DNA of 64,000 nt from the sequence record LC765218.1; one strand, 5' to 3'. A model generated the notes under the pieces. That model made no database searches. It worked only from the letters and a program-made list of their open reading frames with translations, and was not told the origin of the DNA. A program made the translations under genes and the position numbers. Each line of letters starts with the position of its first letter. Position 1 is the stretch's first letter. Positions 12,066 through 19,373 of this stretch are shown piece after piece.

Positions 12066-14177
12066 ATGCAAAGTCTACCAAATGCCATCCGTGAAATTAA
12101 CCTGCGTTTGCTCGGTCACGCGGCAATTGATCCATATTACGGAACAACCTCCGCGGCACGCGGTGCCATGTTGCTGTCACATATTGGACAATCGCCAGTA
12201 GTGGAAGGGAACGAGCCACGTCGGGTAATGGCGGGTATCGAAATGCGTTATGCTGAACATACCTTCGATATTCGTTTCCCAACGGATTGCGTTGTTCTGA
12301 ATATTATCCGTAAGTATCCCACTGGTGTGGGTCGTGGATCTATTCGACATAACCCCGTAACTACGATCGTGTATGAGGAGTATTACGACGAGTTTAAACG
12401 AATCGGTGTTATCCATGTACCAGAGTACCTAAGCTTTCACCAGGACTTTGGATTCAAACTTGAGAAGCAGAAAGATGTATGGAATAACCTTGCCGTTGGT
12501 GAGATGTTTGCCAAAGATACGGTTATTGCACAATCCACAACTGTAAAAGAAAATGGTCTTCTGGGCATGGGCGTTAACGCCACCGTGATGTTCGGTTCTA
12601 TGCCTGGTACTATTGAGGATGGTTTCGTATTCTGCGATGAGTTCCTTCGGGAGAAGATGGCTCCTCGTACTTATACAACCGCTACTGGCGGAGCTGGTAA
12701 GAAAGCATTCTTCCTCAATATGTACGGTGACGATAAAAACATCAAGCTCTTCCCTGATATCGGTGAACGTATTCGTGATGATGGTGTTATCTTCGCTGTT
12801 CGAGACCTTGATGACGATCTCTCGCCAGCTGAAATGACTCCACGTGCATTGCGCACCCTCGATCGTACGTTTGACCGTGCCGTAATTGGTGATCCGGGCG
12901 CAATCATTAAAGACATCAAAGTGTATTGGGATGATCGTCAAAATCCATCTTATACTCCGAGTGGTATGGATGGACAACTGCGGAAGTACTATGACGCACT
13001 GGCGTCGTATTACCGTGAGATCATCAAGGTATATAAAGGTCTGTCTGCCCGCCGTAAAGATCGCCTCCATATGACCGAGGAATTTCGTCAACTTGTAGTA
13101 GAAGCGATGATCTATCTGCCTCAAGCCGAAGGTCAACGTAAGCTGACCCGTATGTATCGACTGGATCAACTTGATGAATGGCGTGTTGAAATCACCTATG
13201 AATCGATTAAAGAACCGGGCGGTGCATATAAAGCCACTGATTTCCATGGCGGCAAAGGTGTCGTTTGTAAGATCATGAAGCGAGCAGATATGCCTCGTGA
13301 CGTGAATGGTAACGTTGCAGATGTTGTTATCTTTGGCGGCTCGACTATGCGTCGTTCTAACTATGGTCGTATCTATGAACATGGTTTCGGTGCAGCATCT
13401 CGCGATCTGGCTCAACGTCTCCGAGTTGAATGTGGGCTAGAGCGTCATGGTTCCTATGAACTTGACGACGTTGTAAACCATATCAGAAACAATCCTGACT
13501 TTATCAAGTATGCCTTTAATGAGCTGCTTGATTTCTATGCAATCGTTACTCCGACAATGCATGGAATGGTTAAGGATCACCCGAATCCGATTCAACATGT
13601 ATCGCATGTATTGAGAGATGGTTTTGCGTACTTGTATTCCCCGGTTGATGACCCCGTACATTTGCCGACAGCAAGTAACCAAATCCTTAATTCTCGCTTC
13701 TGTCCAACATATGCACCGGTGACATATCGAGATCAAACAGGTAAAGAAGTAACGACAAAAGACCCAATGTTGCTTGGCCCGCTATACATGATGCTGCTCG
13801 AAAAGATCGGTGAAGACTGGTCGGCCGTAGCATCGGTGAAGACTCAACAGTTTGGTCTACCATCGAAACTGAATAACTCCGATCGGTCCAGTACACCTGG
13901 TCGAGAAAGCGCTATTCGTTCGTTTGGTGAATCTGAGACTCGATCTTACAACTGTACGGTCGGTGCACTACCCACGGTAGAACTGTTGGATCAAACCAAT
14001 AACCCCGAAGCACACATTGCTGTGATCAACTCTATCCTCACTGCGGATAAACCGTCCAACATTGAGAAAGCAGTTGATCGTTCCAAAATCCCATTCGGTA
14101 ACTCCCGACCAGTTGGACTTCTGTCGCACTTGTTGGAATGCCGTGGATTGCAGTTCAAGTACGCGCCCGGTGTTTAA
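12066..14177 (+). CDS. rpoB: Non-virion RNA polymerase beta subunit, C-terminal part (phiKZ gp71-73-like)
   Basis: ARGAMLLSHIGQ, IEDGFV, KATDFHGGKGVV (bacterial RHGNKGV), LGPLYMMLLEK, SIRSFGESE-like motif; uninterrupted. Confidence 0.92.
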   Translation: MQSLPNAIREINLRLLGHAAIDPYYGTTSAARGAMLLSHIGQSPVVEGNEPRRVMAGIEMRYAEHTFDIRFPTDCVVLNIIRKYPTGVGRGSIRHNPVTTIVYEEYYDEFKRIGVIHVPEYLSFHQDFGFKLEKQKDVWNNLAVGEMFAKDTVIAQSTTVKENGLLGMGVNATVMFGSMPGTIEDGFVFCDEFLREKMAPRTYTTATGGAGKKAFFLNMYGDDKNIKLFPDIGERIRDDGVIFAVRDLDDDLSPAEMTPRALRTLDRTFDRAVIGDPGAIIKDIKVYWDDRQNPSYTPSGMDGQLRKYYDALASYYREIIKVYKGLSARRKDRLHMTEEFRQLVVEAMIYLPQAEGQRKLTRMYRLDQLDEWRVEITYESIKEPGGAYKATDFHGGKGVVCKIMKRADMPRDVNGNVADVVIFGGSTMRRSNYGRIYEHGFGAASRDLAQRLRVECGLERHGSYELDDVVNHIRNNPDFIKYAFNELLDFYAIVTPTMHGMVKDHPNPIQHVSHVLRDGFAYLYSPVDDPVHLPTASNQILNSRFCPTYAPVTYRDQTGKEVTTKDPMLLGPLYMMLLEKIGEDWSAVASVKTQQFGLPSKLNNSDRSSTPGRESAIRSFGESETRSYNCTVGALPTVELLDQTNNPEAHIAVINSILTADKPSNIEKAVDRSKIPFGNSRPVGLLSHLLECRGLQFKYAPGV

Positions 14178-14203
14178 CCGGGCTGCATGCCAAGAGGTAA
14201 ATA

Positions 14204-16177
14204 ATGAATCAGTATAAAGCACGTGATCTTCTCAATATGAGTTACGATGAACTCTGGGCGATTCCAAGTGAATGGCATGAGATCATCTTTGATGACGGGG
14301 AGAAACTCTATGCAAAAGATCGGATCACCAAGCTGTCGGTTCTGCTCTGGTATCCACTGAAAGCTTTCCCTGATGCCCCGGTTCTGAAAGATTACCATCT
14401 GGCATCTACTCGGGTTACCTCTAAATCTCTTGTGAAATACCTTAACAAAGTTATTTGGGGTATTCATGCATGGAGTGGTGAACAGATCGATCCAGAGGTT
14501 TTGGCTAAACTGGCTATTGAAGGAAAGAATTGGCTTTATAATGAAACCACGACTCGACTGAGTGCTTACATTGCAACCCTGTCGATCTTTGACATTATGG
14601 AAGTGTACAATCACCCGGCAGTTAGAAAGGCTAACCAAGATGTACAACCTACTACGTACGGGATTGAAAACATTTCTTACGGGATGATCAAAGAAGCATT
14701 CAACGACGAAACACAGTTCCGTGGTAACAGCATCATTGAGGGCCTGCGCTCGGGTACGCAGAAAATGGAGCAATTGCTTCAGGCATACGGACCACGTGGT
14801 TTCCCGACAGACATTAACTCTGATATTTTCAGTGAGCCGTGTACCACTGGTTACATTGATGGTATTTGGGGTTTGTATGAAAACATGATCGAATCCCGAT
14901 CGGGTACCAAAGCTCTGTTGTATAACAAAGAGCTACTGCGTGTAACCGAGTATTTCAACCGGAAGTCTCAGTTGATTGCTCAGTATGTACAGAACCTACA
15001 CACTGGTGATTGTAATGGTCACTTGATCGACTTCCCTGTAATGCAGGGTACGTTGAAAGCTCTTCGTGGCAAGTACTATCTGAACGAACAGACAGGTCAA
15101 CTGGACTGGCTGAAAGGGGATGAGAAACATCTTATCGGTAAAAAGATTAAGATGCGTTCTATTTTGGGATGTGTGCATCCGGATCCTCAGGGTGTATGTT
15201 CGCGGTGTTATGGGCGACTAAGTTTCTCTATTCCAAAAGGAACTGTCATTGGTCAGGTATCGGCTGTATCCATGGGTGACAAAATCACTTCTGCGGTATT
15301 GTCGACAAAACACACTGATGCAACCTCGGCTGTAGAACAGTATCAGATTGGTGGCGTCGAAGCTAAGTACCTGCGAACTGGATCTGCGGCTGAAACTCTT
15401 TATCTGAAGAAAGAACTCTCGGGTAAAGGTTTCCGCTTGATGATCGGTCGTAACGAAGCCCAGAACCTGGCTGATATTCTGATGATCGATGACCTTAGTG
15501 CATATCCAGCACCGAGTGCTTCTGAACTGACCCGTATTGGTTTGGTACGGACGGTTGATGGAGTAGACGAAGGCGATGTATTGACGGTGTCGCTGTATAA
15601 CCGTCGAGCTAGTCTATCGACTGAAATGCTGCAACATATCAAACGTGTACGTTGGGAACTTGACGCTCGTGATAATATCGTGATCGATATGGCCGGGTTT
15701 GACTTTGCCCTGCCGTTCCTGACGTTGCCTAATAAGCACGTAAACATGTACGAAGTGATGAAGCGTATTCAGTCATTCCTGCACTCTGGTAGTGATACTG
15801 AAGGGTCTAAACTGAGCTCAGATAAGGTAGGTTTTACTAGCAAGACTTATCTTAAGAACTACAAAGACCCAGTTGATGCTTTGGCAGCCACTGTGTCGCT
15901 GTTGAATGAGAAGTTCTCTTTGAATGCCGTTCACTGTGAGGTTCTGGTTTATGCTATGATGGTGCGCTCTATCGCTGAACGCGATTATCGTCTGCCTAAG
16001 CCGGGTATTACGGGTCAGTTTGAAAAATACAACAAACTGATGATGTCCCGTTCTCTTGCTGGTGCGATGTCGTTTGAGAAGCAACATGAGCCGTTGAACA
16101 ATCCTGGCAGTTTCCTCTACACACTGAGGAATGACCATCCCTACGATCTTGCGGTCATGGGAGGTAAGCTGCTCTAA
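14204..16177 (+). CDS. rpoC: Non-virion RNA polymerase beta' subunit, C-terminal part (phiKZ gp74-like)
   Basis: Bridge-helix-like TEYFNRKSQLIAQ...GDC, Zn site C...CSRCYG, trigger-loop-like GQVSAVSMGDKITSAVLSTKH. Confidence 0.9.
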   Translation: MNQYKARDLLNMSYDELWAIPSEWHEIIFDDGEKLYAKDRITKLSVLLWYPLKAFPDAPVLKDYHLASTRVTSKSLVKYLNKVIWGIHAWSGEQIDPEVLAKLAIEGKNWLYNETTTRLSAYIATLSIFDIMEVYNHPAVRKANQDVQPTTYGIENISYGMIKEAFNDETQFRGNSIIEGLRSGTQKMEQLLQAYGPRGFPTDINSDIFSEPCTTGYIDGIWGLYENMIESRSGTKALLYNKELLRVTEYFNRKSQLIAQYVQNLHTGDCNGHLIDFPVMQGTLKALRGKYYLNEQTGQLDWLKGDEKHLIGKKIKMRSILGCVHPDPQGVCSRCYGRLSFSIPKGTVIGQVSAVSMGDKITSAVLSTKHTDATSAVEQYQIGGVEAKYLRTGSAAETLYLKKELSGKGFRLMIGRNEAQNLADILMIDDLSAYPAPSASELTRIGLVRTVDGVDEGDVLTVSLYNRRASLSTEMLQHIKRVRWELDARDNIVIDMAGFDFALPFLTLPNKHVNMYEVMKRIQSFLHSGSDTEGSKLSSDKVGFTSKTYLKNYKDPVDALAATVSLLNEKFSLNAVHCEVLVYAMMVRSIAERDYRLPKPGITGQFEKYNKLMMSRSLAGAMSFEKQHEPLNNPGSFLYTLRNDHPYDLAVMGGKLL

Positions 16178-16186
16178 GATGGAGGT

Positions 16187-16233
16187 CGAGGTAGGGAGGG
16201 CTTTGGCTCTCCCTTTCCCCTCGTTAATTTTTT
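16187..16233 (+). terminator. Hairpin plus U-tract directly before the helicase start codon
   Basis: GAGG-AGGGAG...CTCCCT-CCTC followed by GTTAATTTTTT and then ATG. Confidence 0.55.
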
Positions 16234-17768
16234 ATGCTACCGATACTCAAGGCTGAGCGCTATACGCATGGTGTCCGACTATCTGGGTATACTCGGGAAA
16301 CGTTCGCTAAGATGCAGGGGTTTCTTGAAGGGCTTTCTTTGAAAGAACCTAAGAAAATCCCTGGTAATCGAATCATCATGGAACTCAAGAAAAAGTACTA
16401 TGGTTGTTTCGAAGATCTATCAGAGACTTATATCCACCGAAATTCACTAGAAGACCTGATCGGTTATCTGGAGAACAAAGGTATCCCAAGAGAACGAGTC
16501 GAGATTGAGGATATCCCTGTCCCTAAAGCAGCAACTGCTGTTTACGAAATGTACGAGAAATACGTACTCCGGGATTATCAGGAAATCATCCGTGAAGATA
16601 TTTTGCGTGATTGGTTACATTCTGCACGGGTAGACTTGCAAACGGGAAAGGGAAAACCCTCACGAGCCTAGCGTCCTTGGCTTCGATGGGGGTAAGATGT
16701 GTTGTGATGGTTCCTCCCAAGTATTTTGGTATTTGGATTGAGGCTCTTCAGAACACTTACAAGGACATTGCCCAGAGATACATTACCATCTCGGGTTCCG
16801 CAGAACTCCAAAAACTAATAGATCGCGGCGTCGAAAACGATCTTGAAGGGATTGACGTTATTGTAATCTCTTCTACTACCTACCGGGCATATCTAGATAA
16901 CTTTGAGAAGTATGGTAACCGACTCCATGAGCTCGGATACAATGTACCTCCACCCCGGTTCCACGAAGCAATACAAGCAGGACTGCAAATTAACGACGAG
17001 ATTCAAGAAGATCCAGGACTAACCTTCCGTATCGATATTTACTCTAACATTAATAAGCAGATCTATTTGTCGGCTACTCCCTACACAGGGAACGCCTACG
17101 TGACGAAGATGATTGACAAGATGTTGCCAGCAGAGACCATGTGTCGCCTGCCCAACTACGATGTCTACATCAACTGCATGGGGCTACTCTACACTGAACC
17201 AAAGATCAAACCGAAGGATTATCTTACACCGTTTAAGAATACGTATAACCATGCGCGTTACGAAACGGTAATGATGAAAGATCCTAAACGGATGGATGAC
17301 TATTTCAGGATGGTCGGTCGTATTGCTGAGGGCGTGTATGTGAAAGATCGGTTACCTGGTCAGAAACTACTCCTCCTTTGTGCAACGGTCGCCTTTATTG
17401 AAAAACTGGTTAAATATCTGAAGACTAAGTTCCCTGACCTTGTGGTTAACGGACATGTCTCAGGTTGCAGTTATGAACAGTTACTTAAGAACGACATTAC
17501 GGTGTCCACTATTAAGTCATCTGGTACAGGTGTAGACATCCCTAATCTTCGTGAGGTAGTATTGTTACAAGCTACCGATTCCAAGAAAGATAACATTCAA
17601 ATTCTGGGTCGTCTCCGTAAACTGAAAGACTTCCAAGATGTGGTACCTAGGTTGACCTACCTAGTGTGTGAAAACATACCGCACCACGTGAGATATGCTC
17701 GGAATAAAAGTGAGCATTTCGCCGGTAAAACTCTTTCAATGGTACTCAGACGGATAGCCATGCACTAA
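16234..17768 (+). CDS. SF2 (RAD3/UvsW/SNF2-like) helicase, phiKZ gp75-like, split into two frames at Walker A (16234..16671 and 16611..17768)
   Basis: Frame 0 gives ...VDLQTGKGK and frame -1 gives GKGKTLTS. Downstream motifs DEIQ, SATP, STIKSSGTGVDIPNL and QILGRLR. The joined product would be about 511 aa. Confidence 0.85.
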
Positions 17769-17772
17769 TAAC

Positions 17773-17796
17773 AGCCCACCTTCGGGTGGGCTTTAT
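17773..17796 (+). terminator. Intrinsic terminator
   Basis: AGCCCACC-TTCG-GGTGGGCT-TTAT. Confidence 0.85.
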
Positions 17797-17815
17797 ACCG
17801 TTAAGAGGAATAGAA

Positions 17816-18088
17816 ATGTCACCTGTGATCCTACTTATTGTTTCACCGATATTAACCGTCGTGATGTATGTATTGGAACTGAAGCTCCGTGAGGAGTACA
17901 GAACGGCGCACTATAAACACTTGTTACGTTTAGCCGGACAGAACATCAAACCGAAGTTAATAAAGCAGTCTATAGAGTATTCTGAGATTGCATTGACCCG
18001 ATTGATCCATACGTTCGTAAAGAAATGTTACTTGGTATTAGCTTACTTTACGCTGACCATGTTCGTAATCGCTGCATCCCACATCTAA
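17816..18088 (+). CDS. Small membrane protein
   Basis: ATG 17816 with GAGGA SD (track start 17786); two hydrophobic segments. Confidence 0.65.
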   Translation: MSPVILLIVSPILTVVMYVLELKLREEYRTAHYKHLLRLAGQNIKPKLIKQSIEYSEIALTRLIHTFVKKCYLVLAYFTLTMFVIAASHI

Positions 18089-18098
18089 GGAAATACAA

Positions 18099-18401
18099 AT
18101 GAAAACATCTCCCTCTGCTCTCCCTTTCCCCAACCTAATGTTCCTCCTTCTGGTAATTGTTATAGCAATTCCCGTTGTGGCATACATCTATCTACCTTAT
18201 GCTGCACTGGCTATTTCAACAGGTGTACTAGCTGCATGTACCTGTGTTTTAGGTATCGGTAATGCACTAGTTGATCCAAATGCCTACGATACACCTAAAC
18301 ACTGGAGAGAGTATCGTTATTATCTAATCACTGGATTTGGGTTCTTCACTGTTGCTATGTTCGCAGCAGCTAATCTCAAATATGCATTTAAGTTCATTTA
18401 A
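18099..18401 (+). CDS. Small membrane protein (about 3 TM)
   Basis: 100 aa, AAGGA SD, three hydrophobic stretches. Confidence 0.65.
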   Translation: MKTSPSALPFPNLMFLLLVIVIAIPVVAYIYLPYAALAISTGVLAACTCVLGIGNALVDPNAYDTPKHWREYRYYLITGFGFFTVAMFAAANLKYAFKFI

Positions 18402-18420
18402 AGCCTATATTACAACTGTG
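18397..18420 (+). promoter_or_regulatory. Early promoter
   Basis: TTTAAAGCC-TATATTAC-AACTGTG. Confidence 0.75.
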
Positions 18421-18448
18421 AATATACACCCACATAAAGGACAATGTA

Positions 18449-18658
18449 ATGGCTATTATCACCAATGTATTTGCTTTCGCTATCATCACTCTGTTCATCG
18501 TCTTTTTCCTGAAACAGGGACTTGCGGTCATGGGTGTCAAAACGAACCACCTGCCGATTAAACTGGCTAAAGCTTTCAATGCATCTGGTCCTTTGGCAGC
18601 AATCCTTCTTGCCGTATACTTGATCATGGCAACCTTTTATAACATCTTTCTGAGTTGA
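18449..18658 (+). CDS. Small 2-TM membrane protein
   Basis: 69 aa, AAGGA SD, two hydrophobic helices. Confidence 0.65.
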   Translation: MAIITNVFAFAIITLFIVFFLKQGLAVMGVKTNHLPIKLAKAFNASGPLAAILLAVYLIMATFYNIFLS

Positions 18659-18662
18659 TACC

Positions 18663-18851
18663 ATGGGATGGATTGTACTGATACTCACCTTCTTCGCTTC
18701 TCTTACGGTTGGAGGTGTAATGACTTTCTATGGCTTGGTAGCTAGCAGTAAAACCTTTTCAGATAGAATCTCTATGGTTCTATTTGGTGTAGTTATTATT
18801 GCTATCACCGGCTATAGTGGATATCATTTATTCGACATGCTTCCAAAATAG
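18663..18851 (+). CDS. Small 2-TM membrane protein
   Basis: 62 aa, two hydrophobic helices. Confidence 0.6.
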   Translation: MGWIVLILTFFASLTVGGVMTFYGLVASSKTFSDRISMVLFGVVIIAITGYSGYHLFDMLPK

Positions 18852-18859
18852 GAGTTAAC

Positions 18860-19120
18860 ATGGATTTGATGTTTACTAACCCAATAGCGTTTATTTACGG
18901 GACACTTAGCCTTCCTGGACTATTGATCATGACTGGCTATGCTGTATCGTGGTTGTTCGTAATGGGTGTATGCAAGTGGCTTCCTAATTGGAAGTACCTC
19001 TGCATGTTCCTCTGCGTCAGTTGGGCAATTAGCTTTGCGATTTATCTAGTAATGATCATTACGGCCCTGGTTAGCGTGTATACCCCTCTCCAGTTACCGC
19101 CGTGGACGCTCATGAACTAA
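18860..19120 (+). CDS. Small 2-TM membrane protein
   Basis: 86 aa, AGGAG SD. Confidence 0.65.
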   Translation: MDLMFTNPIAFIYGTLSLPGLLIMTGYAVSWLFVMGVCKWLPNWKYLCMFLCVSWAISFAIYLVMIITALVSVYTPLQLPPWTLMN

Positions 19121-19133
19121 CAAGGAGTTAATC

Positions 19134-19373
19134 ATGGAAACCATCATGCTGATCTGGTGGATCTCTATTTCGATTATCGCTGGGTCCCTGTTCGTAGCAA
19201 AACTGGTAAAAGATAACGATGATGTTCGTCGAACTCGTTTACCAAAGAAAGATATCATCATGCTCGACCGCATTAATATGATTTGCACTGCTCTCATATG
19301 GGGAGCTGCTATCGTAGCGCTGATCACTCTCTTCTTGGGTGGTCTTTTCATGATGATTGAAGCACAAGTGTAA
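19134..19373 (+). CDS. Small 2-TM membrane protein
   Basis: 79 aa, AAGGAG SD. Confidence 0.65.
   Translation: METIMLIWWISISIIAGSLFVAKLVKDNDDVRRTRLPKKDIIMLDRINMICTALIWGAAIVALITLFLGGLFMMIEAQV

Follow-up and report, generated by a model that had tools for sequence, protein, structure and literature searches.

A putative programmed −1 ribosomal frameshift inside the Walker A motif of an XPB-like helicase gene of phiKZ-like jumbo phages

We analyzed a stretch of 64,000 nucleotides (nt) from sequence record LC765218.1 (the window), in which a gene for a superfamily 2 (SF2) helicase is split between two reading frames. Window positions 16200–17800 were 100% identical to Pseudomonas phage BRkr and 99.8%–99.9% identical to the phages phiHQ, phiLBG22, HHBS36_1, PS119XW, and PA1C. 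All of these belong to a single species of nucleus-forming, phiKZ-like jumbo phages, Pawinskivirus PS119XW, with isolates from Japan, Pakistan, France, Germany, Poland, and Russia. The split gene is the homolog of phiKZ gp075 and PhiPA3 gp068, where it is annotated as 'RAD2/SF2 helicase', and phiKZ075 is among the core genes of the Chimalliviridae (PMC12571901). In the deposited PS119XW-type genomes, the gene is annotated as two coding sequences (CDSs), several of them 'hypothetical', with starts that exclude the P-loop. The features of the locus are listed in Table 1.

Table 1. Features of the split helicase gene and of its 3′ flank (window coordinates)
Feature	Coordinates	Strand	Basis and remarks
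Frame-0 open reading frame: helicase N part, 137 amino acids (Met to Thr of LQT), then GKGKPSRA and stop	16234..16671	+	Open reading frame list, translation
−1-frame coding region, GKGKT (Walker A) to C-terminus, 374 amino acids and stop	16644..17768	+	Open frame
TTG, sole possible −1-frame start 5′ of Walker A in the window lineage	16611..16613	+	Sequence
Slippery heptamer G_GGA_AAG, X_XXY_YYZ phase in frame 0	16644..16650	+	Sequence; codons ACG GGA AAG GGA AAA CCC
Second heptamer G_GGA_AAA, phased X_XXY_YYZ	16650..16656	+	Sequence; abuts the hairpin (0-nt spacer), lineage-specific
Spacer between heptamer and hairpin, 5 nt (6 without the A-U closing pair)	16651..16655	+	Minimum-free-energy structures
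Candidate stimulatory stem-loop, 16656–16668 paired with 16679–16693, 13 base pairs	16656..16693	+	RNAfold minimum-free-energy fold
Frame-0 stop TAG in the hairpin loop	16669..16671	+	Sequence; 7 codons 3′ of the heptamer
GC-rich hairpin 3′ of the helicase stop codon	17773..17792	.	Sequence and terminator-like scan match

The frame-0 open reading frame (ORF) ends with ...VDLQTGKGKPSRA and reads VDLQT GKGK PSRA stop; its predicted product, made without any shift, has 145 amino acids (aa). The open stretch of the −1 frame runs from 16611 to 17768. From 16644 it reads GKGKTLTSLASLASMGV, in which GKGK is followed by TLTSLASLASMGV, and it continues to the normal helicase C-terminus, so that this region holds the remainder of RecA1, RecA2, and Helicase_C. 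The N part (137 aa) and the −1 part (374 aa) add up to 511 aa, which is the length of the uninterrupted homolog of phage HPP-Temi. Walker A (motif I, QTGKGKT) is assembled only across the shift, and the tryptic peptide TLTSLASLASMGVR is a C-part peptide of the predicted shifted protein. A first-pass annotation, made by a model from the letters of the window, had described this split (frame 0, GKGK-PSRA stop; frame −1, GKGK-TLTS), and it is present exactly as described. The same annotation had proposed that a −1 shift is the sole route to the full-length helicase of ~511 aa and that the 145-aa product is made as well, a proposal that the comparative sequence evidence given below backs.

At the junction lies the heptamer G_GGA_AAG, which has been described as highly shift-prone in Escherichia coli (PMC5009743). 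The first-pass annotation had pointed to two overlapping heptamers. Both are indeed correctly phased, but the second is absent from the other split lineages introduced below, where its position is occupied by GGGAAGA, GGAAAAA, GGAAAGA, GGAAAGT, or GGCAAGA. It is probably not a functional site.

The junction was identical, base for base, in seven records of the species (BRkr, phiHQ, phiLBG22, HHBS36_1, PS119XW, its RefSeq copy, and PA1C). In the sister species HPP-Temi (89% nt identity), the gene is uninterrupted, encodes 511 aa, and reads ACA GGT AAA GGA AAG ACC at this place; the gene of PhiPA3, also uninterrupted, reads ACA GGA AAA GGG AAA ACG. Compared to these two, the window lineage lacks one base in the first Gly-Lys codons. 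The first-pass annotation had given, as an alternative, a single A missing from the A4 run; in the alignment with PhiPA3 and HPP-Temi, the gap lies elsewhere, at the first Gly codon/first A run.

To find other split alleles, a tblastn search was run with the HPP-Temi protein, and 300 phage records were found to contain the gene. In the best 60 of these 300 records, a two-piece alignment was obtained only for the PS119XW group. In all, ~290 other phage records were counted as uninterrupted. With the 145-aa fragment as the query, three diverged fragments were found (142–145 aa, 73%–75% identity) that end just past LQTGK, and the C-terminal part as the query gave more C fragments (~350 aa) among ~100 full-length clusters. 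Seven further split lineages were identified (L027, L028/L029, L030, L033, L034/L035, L036, and L042). Thus, the search of relatives that the first-pass annotation had suggested as a check found the split and the first heptamer at the same codons in seven additional cases. These lineages are uncultured and come from metagenomes or run assemblies, their best cultured relatives being 62%–74% identical; L028/L029 and L034/L035 are each one sequence recovered from two separate sequencing runs. All seven read CAR ACG-GGGAAAG-G, and in the −1 frame they encode GKGK(T/S)L and a full-length C part, except that in L042 the GKGK is followed by an intein.

The heptamer was identical in 8/8 split lineages despite diverged flanks, and in every one of them the frame-0 stop follows 4 or 7 codons 3′ of it. 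The C parts of the other split lineages are 59%–78% identical to that of the window, and the N and C parts together total 504–513 aa across the split lineages, as do the uninterrupted homologs. No split was seen at any other position of the gene, as all readable junctions are at the same site. In six of the eight split lineages, a −1-frame stop occurs 4–12 codons 5′ of GKGK and is not followed by any ATG, GTG, or TTG, so that Walker A would be joined to the rest of the protein only by shifting. By this comparison, the TTG at 16611 in the window is outside the conserved design. The split trait is patchy and was found in ~7% of the sequence clusters.

Exact DNA pattern scans returned only chance matches beyond the contigs that had already been found. 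The first of these scans demanded a Thr codon (ACN) after GKGK and missed the Ser and intein alleles. One additional candidate, L037 (P0105; ENA ERZ23500372 scaffold_2, ~2390–2500), was rejected as a split allele because a run of Ns, a scaffold gap, covers its Walker A. This chimallivirus assembly breaks exactly at the Walker A region.

Structures that stimulate −1 frameshifting lie ~5–9 nt 3′ of the heptamer. The hairpin proposed downstream of the junction by the first-pass annotation was recovered by RNAfold as the minimum-free-energy (MFE) structure. Two single bases, A16686 and U16682, are bulged, there is a small stem at the apex, and the hairpin was still part of the MFE structure when 141 nt were folded. 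Its folding free energy (dG) was −16.5 to −19.2 kcal/mol, with z-scores of −2.0 to −2.75 against dinucleotide shuffles, both varying with the stretch folded. The uninterrupted sister HPP-Temi has no such hairpin (MFE −7.6 to −8.7 kcal/mol; −4.5 kcal/mol when anchored at this position).

MFE folds were then compared between the split lineages, using the 55 nt 3′ of each heptamer (87 nt for L042). All eight lineages gave an MFE stem with the 5′ arm starting 5–6 nt after the heptamer. The stems are unlike in sequence between lineages (for example, CCCUUUCG/CGAAAGGG, CCCUCAGCGCG/CGCGACUGAGGG, and CGCUCUGCA/UGCAGAGCG), and RNAalifold found no common-column structure in seven aligned cassettes. This is because the 3′ arms occupy different alignment columns: the 5′ arms begin at a shared column, whereas their 3′ partners are at columns 47, 48, 49, or 57. 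From these sequences, we read the lineage hairpins as convergent. No Rfam family matched the frameshift site.

The anchored hairpins of seven split lineages had dG values of −11.9 to −22.6 kcal/mol, compared to a median of about −10 kcal/mol for 19 uninterrupted homologs (Mann-Whitney p = 0.006). When each split allele was paired with its nearest uninterrupted relative, the split one was the stronger in 4/4 pairs (−18.2/−4.5, −17.0/−8.7, −22.6/−6.8, and −19.8/−17.7 kcal/mol). As a control, the same peptides were recoded with synonymous codons drawn from the codon usage of each gene. Against these recodings, the seven split lineages had z-scores of −2.3 (window), −1.5, −0.3, −3.2, −3.5, −2.1, and −3.6, whereas the mean of the uninterrupted homologs was −0.2. 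These scores indicate selection for the hairpin at synonymous sites, confined to alleles with a broken frame. In the uninterrupted PhiPA3 gp068 (L002:1952–2005), the RNA 3′ of Walker A reached −22.8 kcal/mol, with a z-score of −3.2 against synonymous recodings. This structured RNA could be a pre-adapted allele, a reverted allele, or chance.

Split and uninterrupted alleles also differ at the codons upstream of and within the site. The first G of the heptamer (X = G) requires a Thr codon ending in G, and such a codon was present in 8/8 split and 4/19 uninterrupted alleles (Fisher p = 2.2e-4). Three uninterrupted alleles read ACG GGT AAA G and are one deletion away from the heptamer; hence, a one-step origin is available. 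In L033, L034, and L042, the Arg-Arg of SRRL is encoded by AGG AGG or AGG AGA, whereas CGN codons are used in the uninterrupted relatives. The resulting AGGAGG/AGGAGA lies ~12–14 nt 5′ of the heptamer in these three lineages and pairs with the anti-Shine-Dalgarno (anti-SD) sequence at −8.5 to −11.4 kcal/mol. Overall, anti-SD pairing was stronger in the split than in the uninterrupted alleles (Mann-Whitney p = 0.002).

Selection on the gene was estimated against HPP-Temi. The ratio of nonsynonymous to synonymous substitution rates (omega) was 0.057 for the N part and 0.037 for the C part, and the C-part protein was 96.7% identical. L036 and L042 both kept the cassette at a synonymous divergence (pS) of 0.81 and a nonsynonymous divergence (pN) of 0.12, with proteins that are 83% identical. 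As judged from these substitution patterns, purifying selection acts on both ORFs.

A maximum-likelihood tree of the C parts was built (100 rows, quick IQ-TREE search; P0080, P0082, P0088, P0105, P0107, and P0111 were left out). Each of the seven split rows was placed among uninterrupted relatives, giving seven state changes that are forced by well-supported branches. A single split clade was rejected by the approximately unbiased (AU) test (log-likelihood difference 713, p = 1e-49). L042 is outside this tree; it is closest to L036, and these two may share one origin. Independent gains are the parsimonious reading of the tree and are consistent with the non-homologous hairpins. There appear to have been at least seven independent origins of the cassette, all at the same seven bases; the hairpin differs from one to the next, and its distance is fixed.

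We favor the explanation that the helicase gene is live and is read by means of programmed −1 ribosomal frameshifting, to which we assign a probability of about 0.83. Very probably, the slippery sequence and the RNA hairpin together cause ribosomes to move back by one base. A frame-0 ribosome on the heptamer would have its P-site tRNA-Gly paired with GGA and its A-site tRNA-Lys paired with AAG, while the stem-loop 5–6 nt downstream would resist unwinding. In a fraction of the ribosomes, the two tRNAs would re-pair one base back, from GGA to GGG and from AAG to AAA. The shifted ribosomes would continue with GKGKTLTS in the −1 frame and produce the 511-aa XPB-like SF2 translocase. As Gly-Lys is encoded by both frames at the shift site, the Walker A motif would be seamless, with no difference from the uninterrupted homologs. 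The remaining ribosomes would stop seven codons further on at TAG and release the 145-aa product, consisting of an N-terminal alpha/beta domain and the first elements of RecA1. The arrangement may have originated when an uninterrupted gene lost one base in ACG GGN AAA G. Such a deletion leaves an intrinsically shifty heptamer, and some helicase would therefore still be made. The stimulators would have been selected afterwards, namely the hairpin and, in some lineages, the upstream Shine-Dalgarno-like AGGAGG, and this origin would have been repeated independently in several chimallivirus lineages.

What the sequences show are the signals, with their spacing and recurrence, and the purifying selection on both ORFs. 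Several points weigh against programmed frameshifting. The −1 shift itself and its efficiency are what we infer from the sequences. The hairpin of L028 is weak (−11.9 kcal/mol, z-score −0.3), and strong folds also occur at this place in the uninterrupted PhiPA3, L022, and L040, which means that the two kinds of allele are not told apart by the hairpin alone. The SD-like element of the window, GCACGGGUA, is weak (−3.8 kcal/mol), the same as in the uninterrupted relatives. In this gene, isolates of the PS119XW species differ by only six single-nucleotide polymorphisms (SNPs; three synonymous and three nonsynonymous), which give no power to show selection after the split. Finally, antisense oligonucleotide (ASO) knockdown of phiKZ075 lowered the ChmA levels but not the plaque counts (PMC12571901), and a large loss of the helicase may thus be tolerated in the laboratory.

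The same knockdown, which left the plaque-forming units (PFU) of phiKZ unreduced, would fit an inactivated gene, in which the 1-nt deletion killed a helicase whose loss is tolerated, and the heptamer and the hairpin are a chance result of GKGK/TLTS coding. The frameshift could also be recent, as the isolates of the species differ by only ~0.3%, and the within-species SNPs show no constraint. We nevertheless consider inactivation quite unlikely. Over 1.5 kb, each of the eight lineages has a single break, always at the same seven bases, in ORFs that are otherwise intact (504–513 aa; omega ~0.04–0.06), and L036 and L042 retain the arrangement at saturated synonymous divergence. In addition, the hairpins of the split lineages exceed synonymous recodings, the rare AGG AGG codons of split lineages create an SD-like element, and the helicase belongs to the core genes of the family. 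The first-pass annotation had left room for a simple mutation; this holds insofar as the site is one base shorter than in the uninterrupted homologs, but the deletion appears to be compensated and maintained, and is no fresh lesion. Slightly less probable again is the synthesis of two polypeptides that assemble, with the N fragment started at 16234 and the C fragment at the TTG at 16611 or at a GenBank ATG (16686 or 16707). GenBank annotators did call two CDSs, and in the window a start at TTG 16611 would take in GKGKT. However, no SD sequence is present 5′ of this TTG, the annotated ATG starts remove the whole P-loop, and a separately started C fragment would lack Walker A in 6/8 split lineages. 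Moreover, the break falls inside RecA1.

The frame could also be restored during transcription, if the phage or host RNA polymerase added a base in the G3, A3, or A4 runs of some mRNAs. The site is made of short homopolymer runs and the multisubunit RNA polymerases of chimalliviruses are unusual, but it is established that productive runs have ~6–9 or more identical bases (reviewed in PMC5009743), compared to 3–4 here. As the conserved, phased X_XXY_YYZ with a hairpin at 5–6 nt is a signature of ribosomal recoding, transcriptional slippage seems very improbable. A base dropped from a homopolymer run during sequencing or assembly, which the first-pass annotation had kept as an alternative, has a negligible chance of being the cause. 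Short G and A runs do occur at the site, and PA1C has other 1-nt length differences in nearby intergenic DNA. Yet the junction is the same in all seven records of the species, which come from six countries, and it recurs in several metagenome assemblies, two of which have a replicate from a separate run. Moreover, an error would not track the lineage-specific hairpins and SD-like codon choices.

Beyond programmed frameshifting as such, Walker A might be a hotspot for the repeated birth of complete −1 cassettes because the split is adaptive and not merely tolerated, an extension that we find conceivable but doubtful. The split might set the ratio of a free N-terminal XPB-type accessory domain to the full translocase. 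Alternatively, the 1-nt change might shield the P-loop DNA from invasion by an intein/homing endonuclease; in related phages, an intein is inserted in this P-loop.

Such an intein of ~200 aa was found inside the helicase Walker A of a Noxifer-like lineage, in L042:1468–2103 (Logan ERR6170086 contig), P0080, and P0082. It is located after GKGK, starts with ALKFDTPV (Ala1), and ends with ...VTHN, which is followed by the Walker A Thr. In L042, the intein occurs together with G_GGA_AAG 12 nt upstream, and the intein-coding RNA forms a structure (−29.9 kcal/mol, z-score −3.5) 6 nt after the heptamer. In the IMG/VR sequences L064–L068, inteins starting with Ala or Glu are located right after the P-loop GK (GSGK-A.., GLGK-E.., and GVGK-A..) of other phage ATPase/helicase genes, all of which are uninterrupted. 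A general link between P-loop inteins and frameshifting was rejected, since five other intein-bearing IMG/VR P-loop genes are uninterrupted. P-loop inteins of the L064–L068 type are widespread and, in the sequences compared, not generally tied to frameshifting.

The two halves of the gene match consecutive parts of one helicase profile. On the phrog_16 'DNA helicase' profile, the N ORF covered positions 66–215 and the C part positions 329–609. In the window lineage, the Pfam families ResIII (score 22.2, cutoff 22.5) and Helicase_C (16.9–17.8, cutoff 23.5) both scored just below their cutoffs, and ResIII was above the cutoff in several homologs. A sequence profile searched against the PDB matched XPB (E 2e-6), best around the YQ motif and Walker A. 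The AlphaFold model of the PhiPA3 homolog (predicted local distance difference test [pLDDT] 92.4) gave XPB/Ssl2 of TFIIH as the best match (E 1e-14, query-normalized template modeling [TM] score ~0.6), followed by FANCM, T4 UvsW, and Chd1. On the basis of this model, the full-length product is an XPB-like SF2 translocase/helicase. The break position in the model is inside RecA1, between the strand 130–134 and the P-loop helix. XPB/Ssl2 (TFIIH) and the archaeal XPB SF2 translocases, which gave the best matches in both fold and profile, likewise consist of an N-terminal accessory domain and two RecA domains, but they share only 10%–15% sequence identity with the phage helicase, whose N-terminal domain has no convincing structural match.

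The AlphaFold2 (AF2) model of the 145-aa product (pLDDT 87) contains a compact alpha/beta domain at residues 5–93 (pLDDT >88) and a less confident tail. It suggests that the non-shifted product would be a folded accessory domain with a RecA1 stub. A fold search with the N-terminal domain found nothing convincing (best E 0.006 with a low TM score; N-terminal halves of XPB at E ~0.1), and its sequence profile gave only spurious matches to myosin light chains in the PDB. Most members of the family never make the short product, which argues against a general requirement for it.

The arrangement resembles several known recoding systems. In the IS3-family OrfA/OrfAB genes (IS911, IS150), the full enzyme is likewise obtained only by a −1 shift at a heptamer of the X_XXA_AAG type, with a downstream structure and sometimes an upstream SD sequence, and the non-shifted product is the N-terminal domain alone. 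The heptamer there is A_AAA_AAG and the protein a transposase, whereas here it is G_GGA_AAG in a phage core helicase, the shift would occur within the catalytic motif, and the trait is patchy and polyphyletic and not family-wide. E. coli dnaX (tau/gamma) combines an SD-like element, a heptamer ending in A_AAG, and a stem-loop ~6 nt downstream, and this three-part signal is complete in L033, L034, and L042. Both dnaX and the helicase gene encode an ATPase of DNA metabolism with long and short products that share their N-terminus. In dnaX, however, the long product is read in frame 0 and the short one is obtained by shifting, the reverse of what is predicted for the phage helicase, and the shift occurs after the ATPase domains and not inside the P-loop.

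The G/GT tail assembly chaperone of lambda has the same G_GGA_AAG heptamer and a −1 shift in a phage gene. Its signal is at the end of gene G, where it extends the protein at a few percent, and its position is conserved across the tailed phages. In contrast, the helicase heptamer is in Walker A and is accompanied by a hairpin, and the shifted product is predicted to be the only functional form. Compensatory 'problem'/'savior' indel frameshifting, such as that at the G-string of herpes simplex virus (HSV) thymidine kinase (PMC5009743), also corrects a 1-nt indel by slippage on the site. The helicase gene differs from it in its selected stimulators and deep retention, and looks like an evolved cassette rather than low-level leakiness.

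Literature searches yielded no report of frameshifting in jumbo-phage helicases and no mass spectrometry, western blot, or reporter data on a trans-frame product, and the HPP-Temi paper does not mention the helicase. Judged by its sequence signals, the cassette appears to be a real, maintained −1 programmed frameshift of the standard bacterial design in a new gene context. Its unusual aspects are the location of the site inside Walker A with a seamless product and the repeated independent origin. The gene should be annotated as one recoded gene. If confirmed, it would place a frameshift outside the usual tail-chaperone and capsid cases of phages, in the catalytic P-loop of a conserved XPB-like translocase of nucleus-forming jumbo phages. 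The close uninterrupted relatives represent 'before' states, which make it possible to reconstruct how programmed frameshifting originated and to test this. Phages of the PS119XW type are considered for therapy, and expression of their helicase would hinge on the frameshifting properties of the host tRNAs and ribosomes.

The helicase gene is located immediately 3′ of two phage RNA polymerase beta-subunit genes (window 12066–17768). XPB is the promoter-opening motor of TFIIH. The RNA polymerase neighbors, together with the drop of ChmA upon phiKZ075 knockdown, hint at a role of the helicase in transcription and not in replication. The GC-rich hairpin after the helicase stop codon is likely the end of the transcription unit. 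Window positions 17786–19373 hold six consecutive small ORFs (62–100 aa) that are strongly hydrophobic. These are far more diverged than the adjacent core genes (61%–76% nt identity to HPP-Temi, with indels), and no PHROG match was obtained for the two of them that were searched.

Divergence from HPP-Temi is uneven along the helicase gene. The first ~270 nt (window 16230–16499) are 98%–100% identical to HPP-Temi, compared to ~88% in the flanks, and this patch ends ~100 nt 5′ of the frameshift site. It may reflect recent recombination or a constraint at the nucleotide level. The synonymous divergence (dS) from HPP-Temi was 0.22 for the N part and 0.80 for the C part. The 90 nt around the cassette are 80% identical between BRkr and HPP-Temi, compared to ~88%, which places them with the most diverged stretches of the gene.

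Compared to the other isolates, PA1C has two 1-nt length changes beside the helicase gene (L003 1480–1535 and after 3069), which the annotated CDS coordinates place in intergenic DNA; the frameshift junction is unchanged. Owing to one of these changes, the annotated N-terminal ORF of PA1C starts 55 nt earlier. Pieces of an uninterrupted chimallivirus helicase (...LQTGKGKTLTSLASVAVM...) are also encoded by short NCBI contigs labeled Klebsiella pneumoniae (P0005–P0007), which are presumably jumbo-phage DNA within bacterial assemblies.

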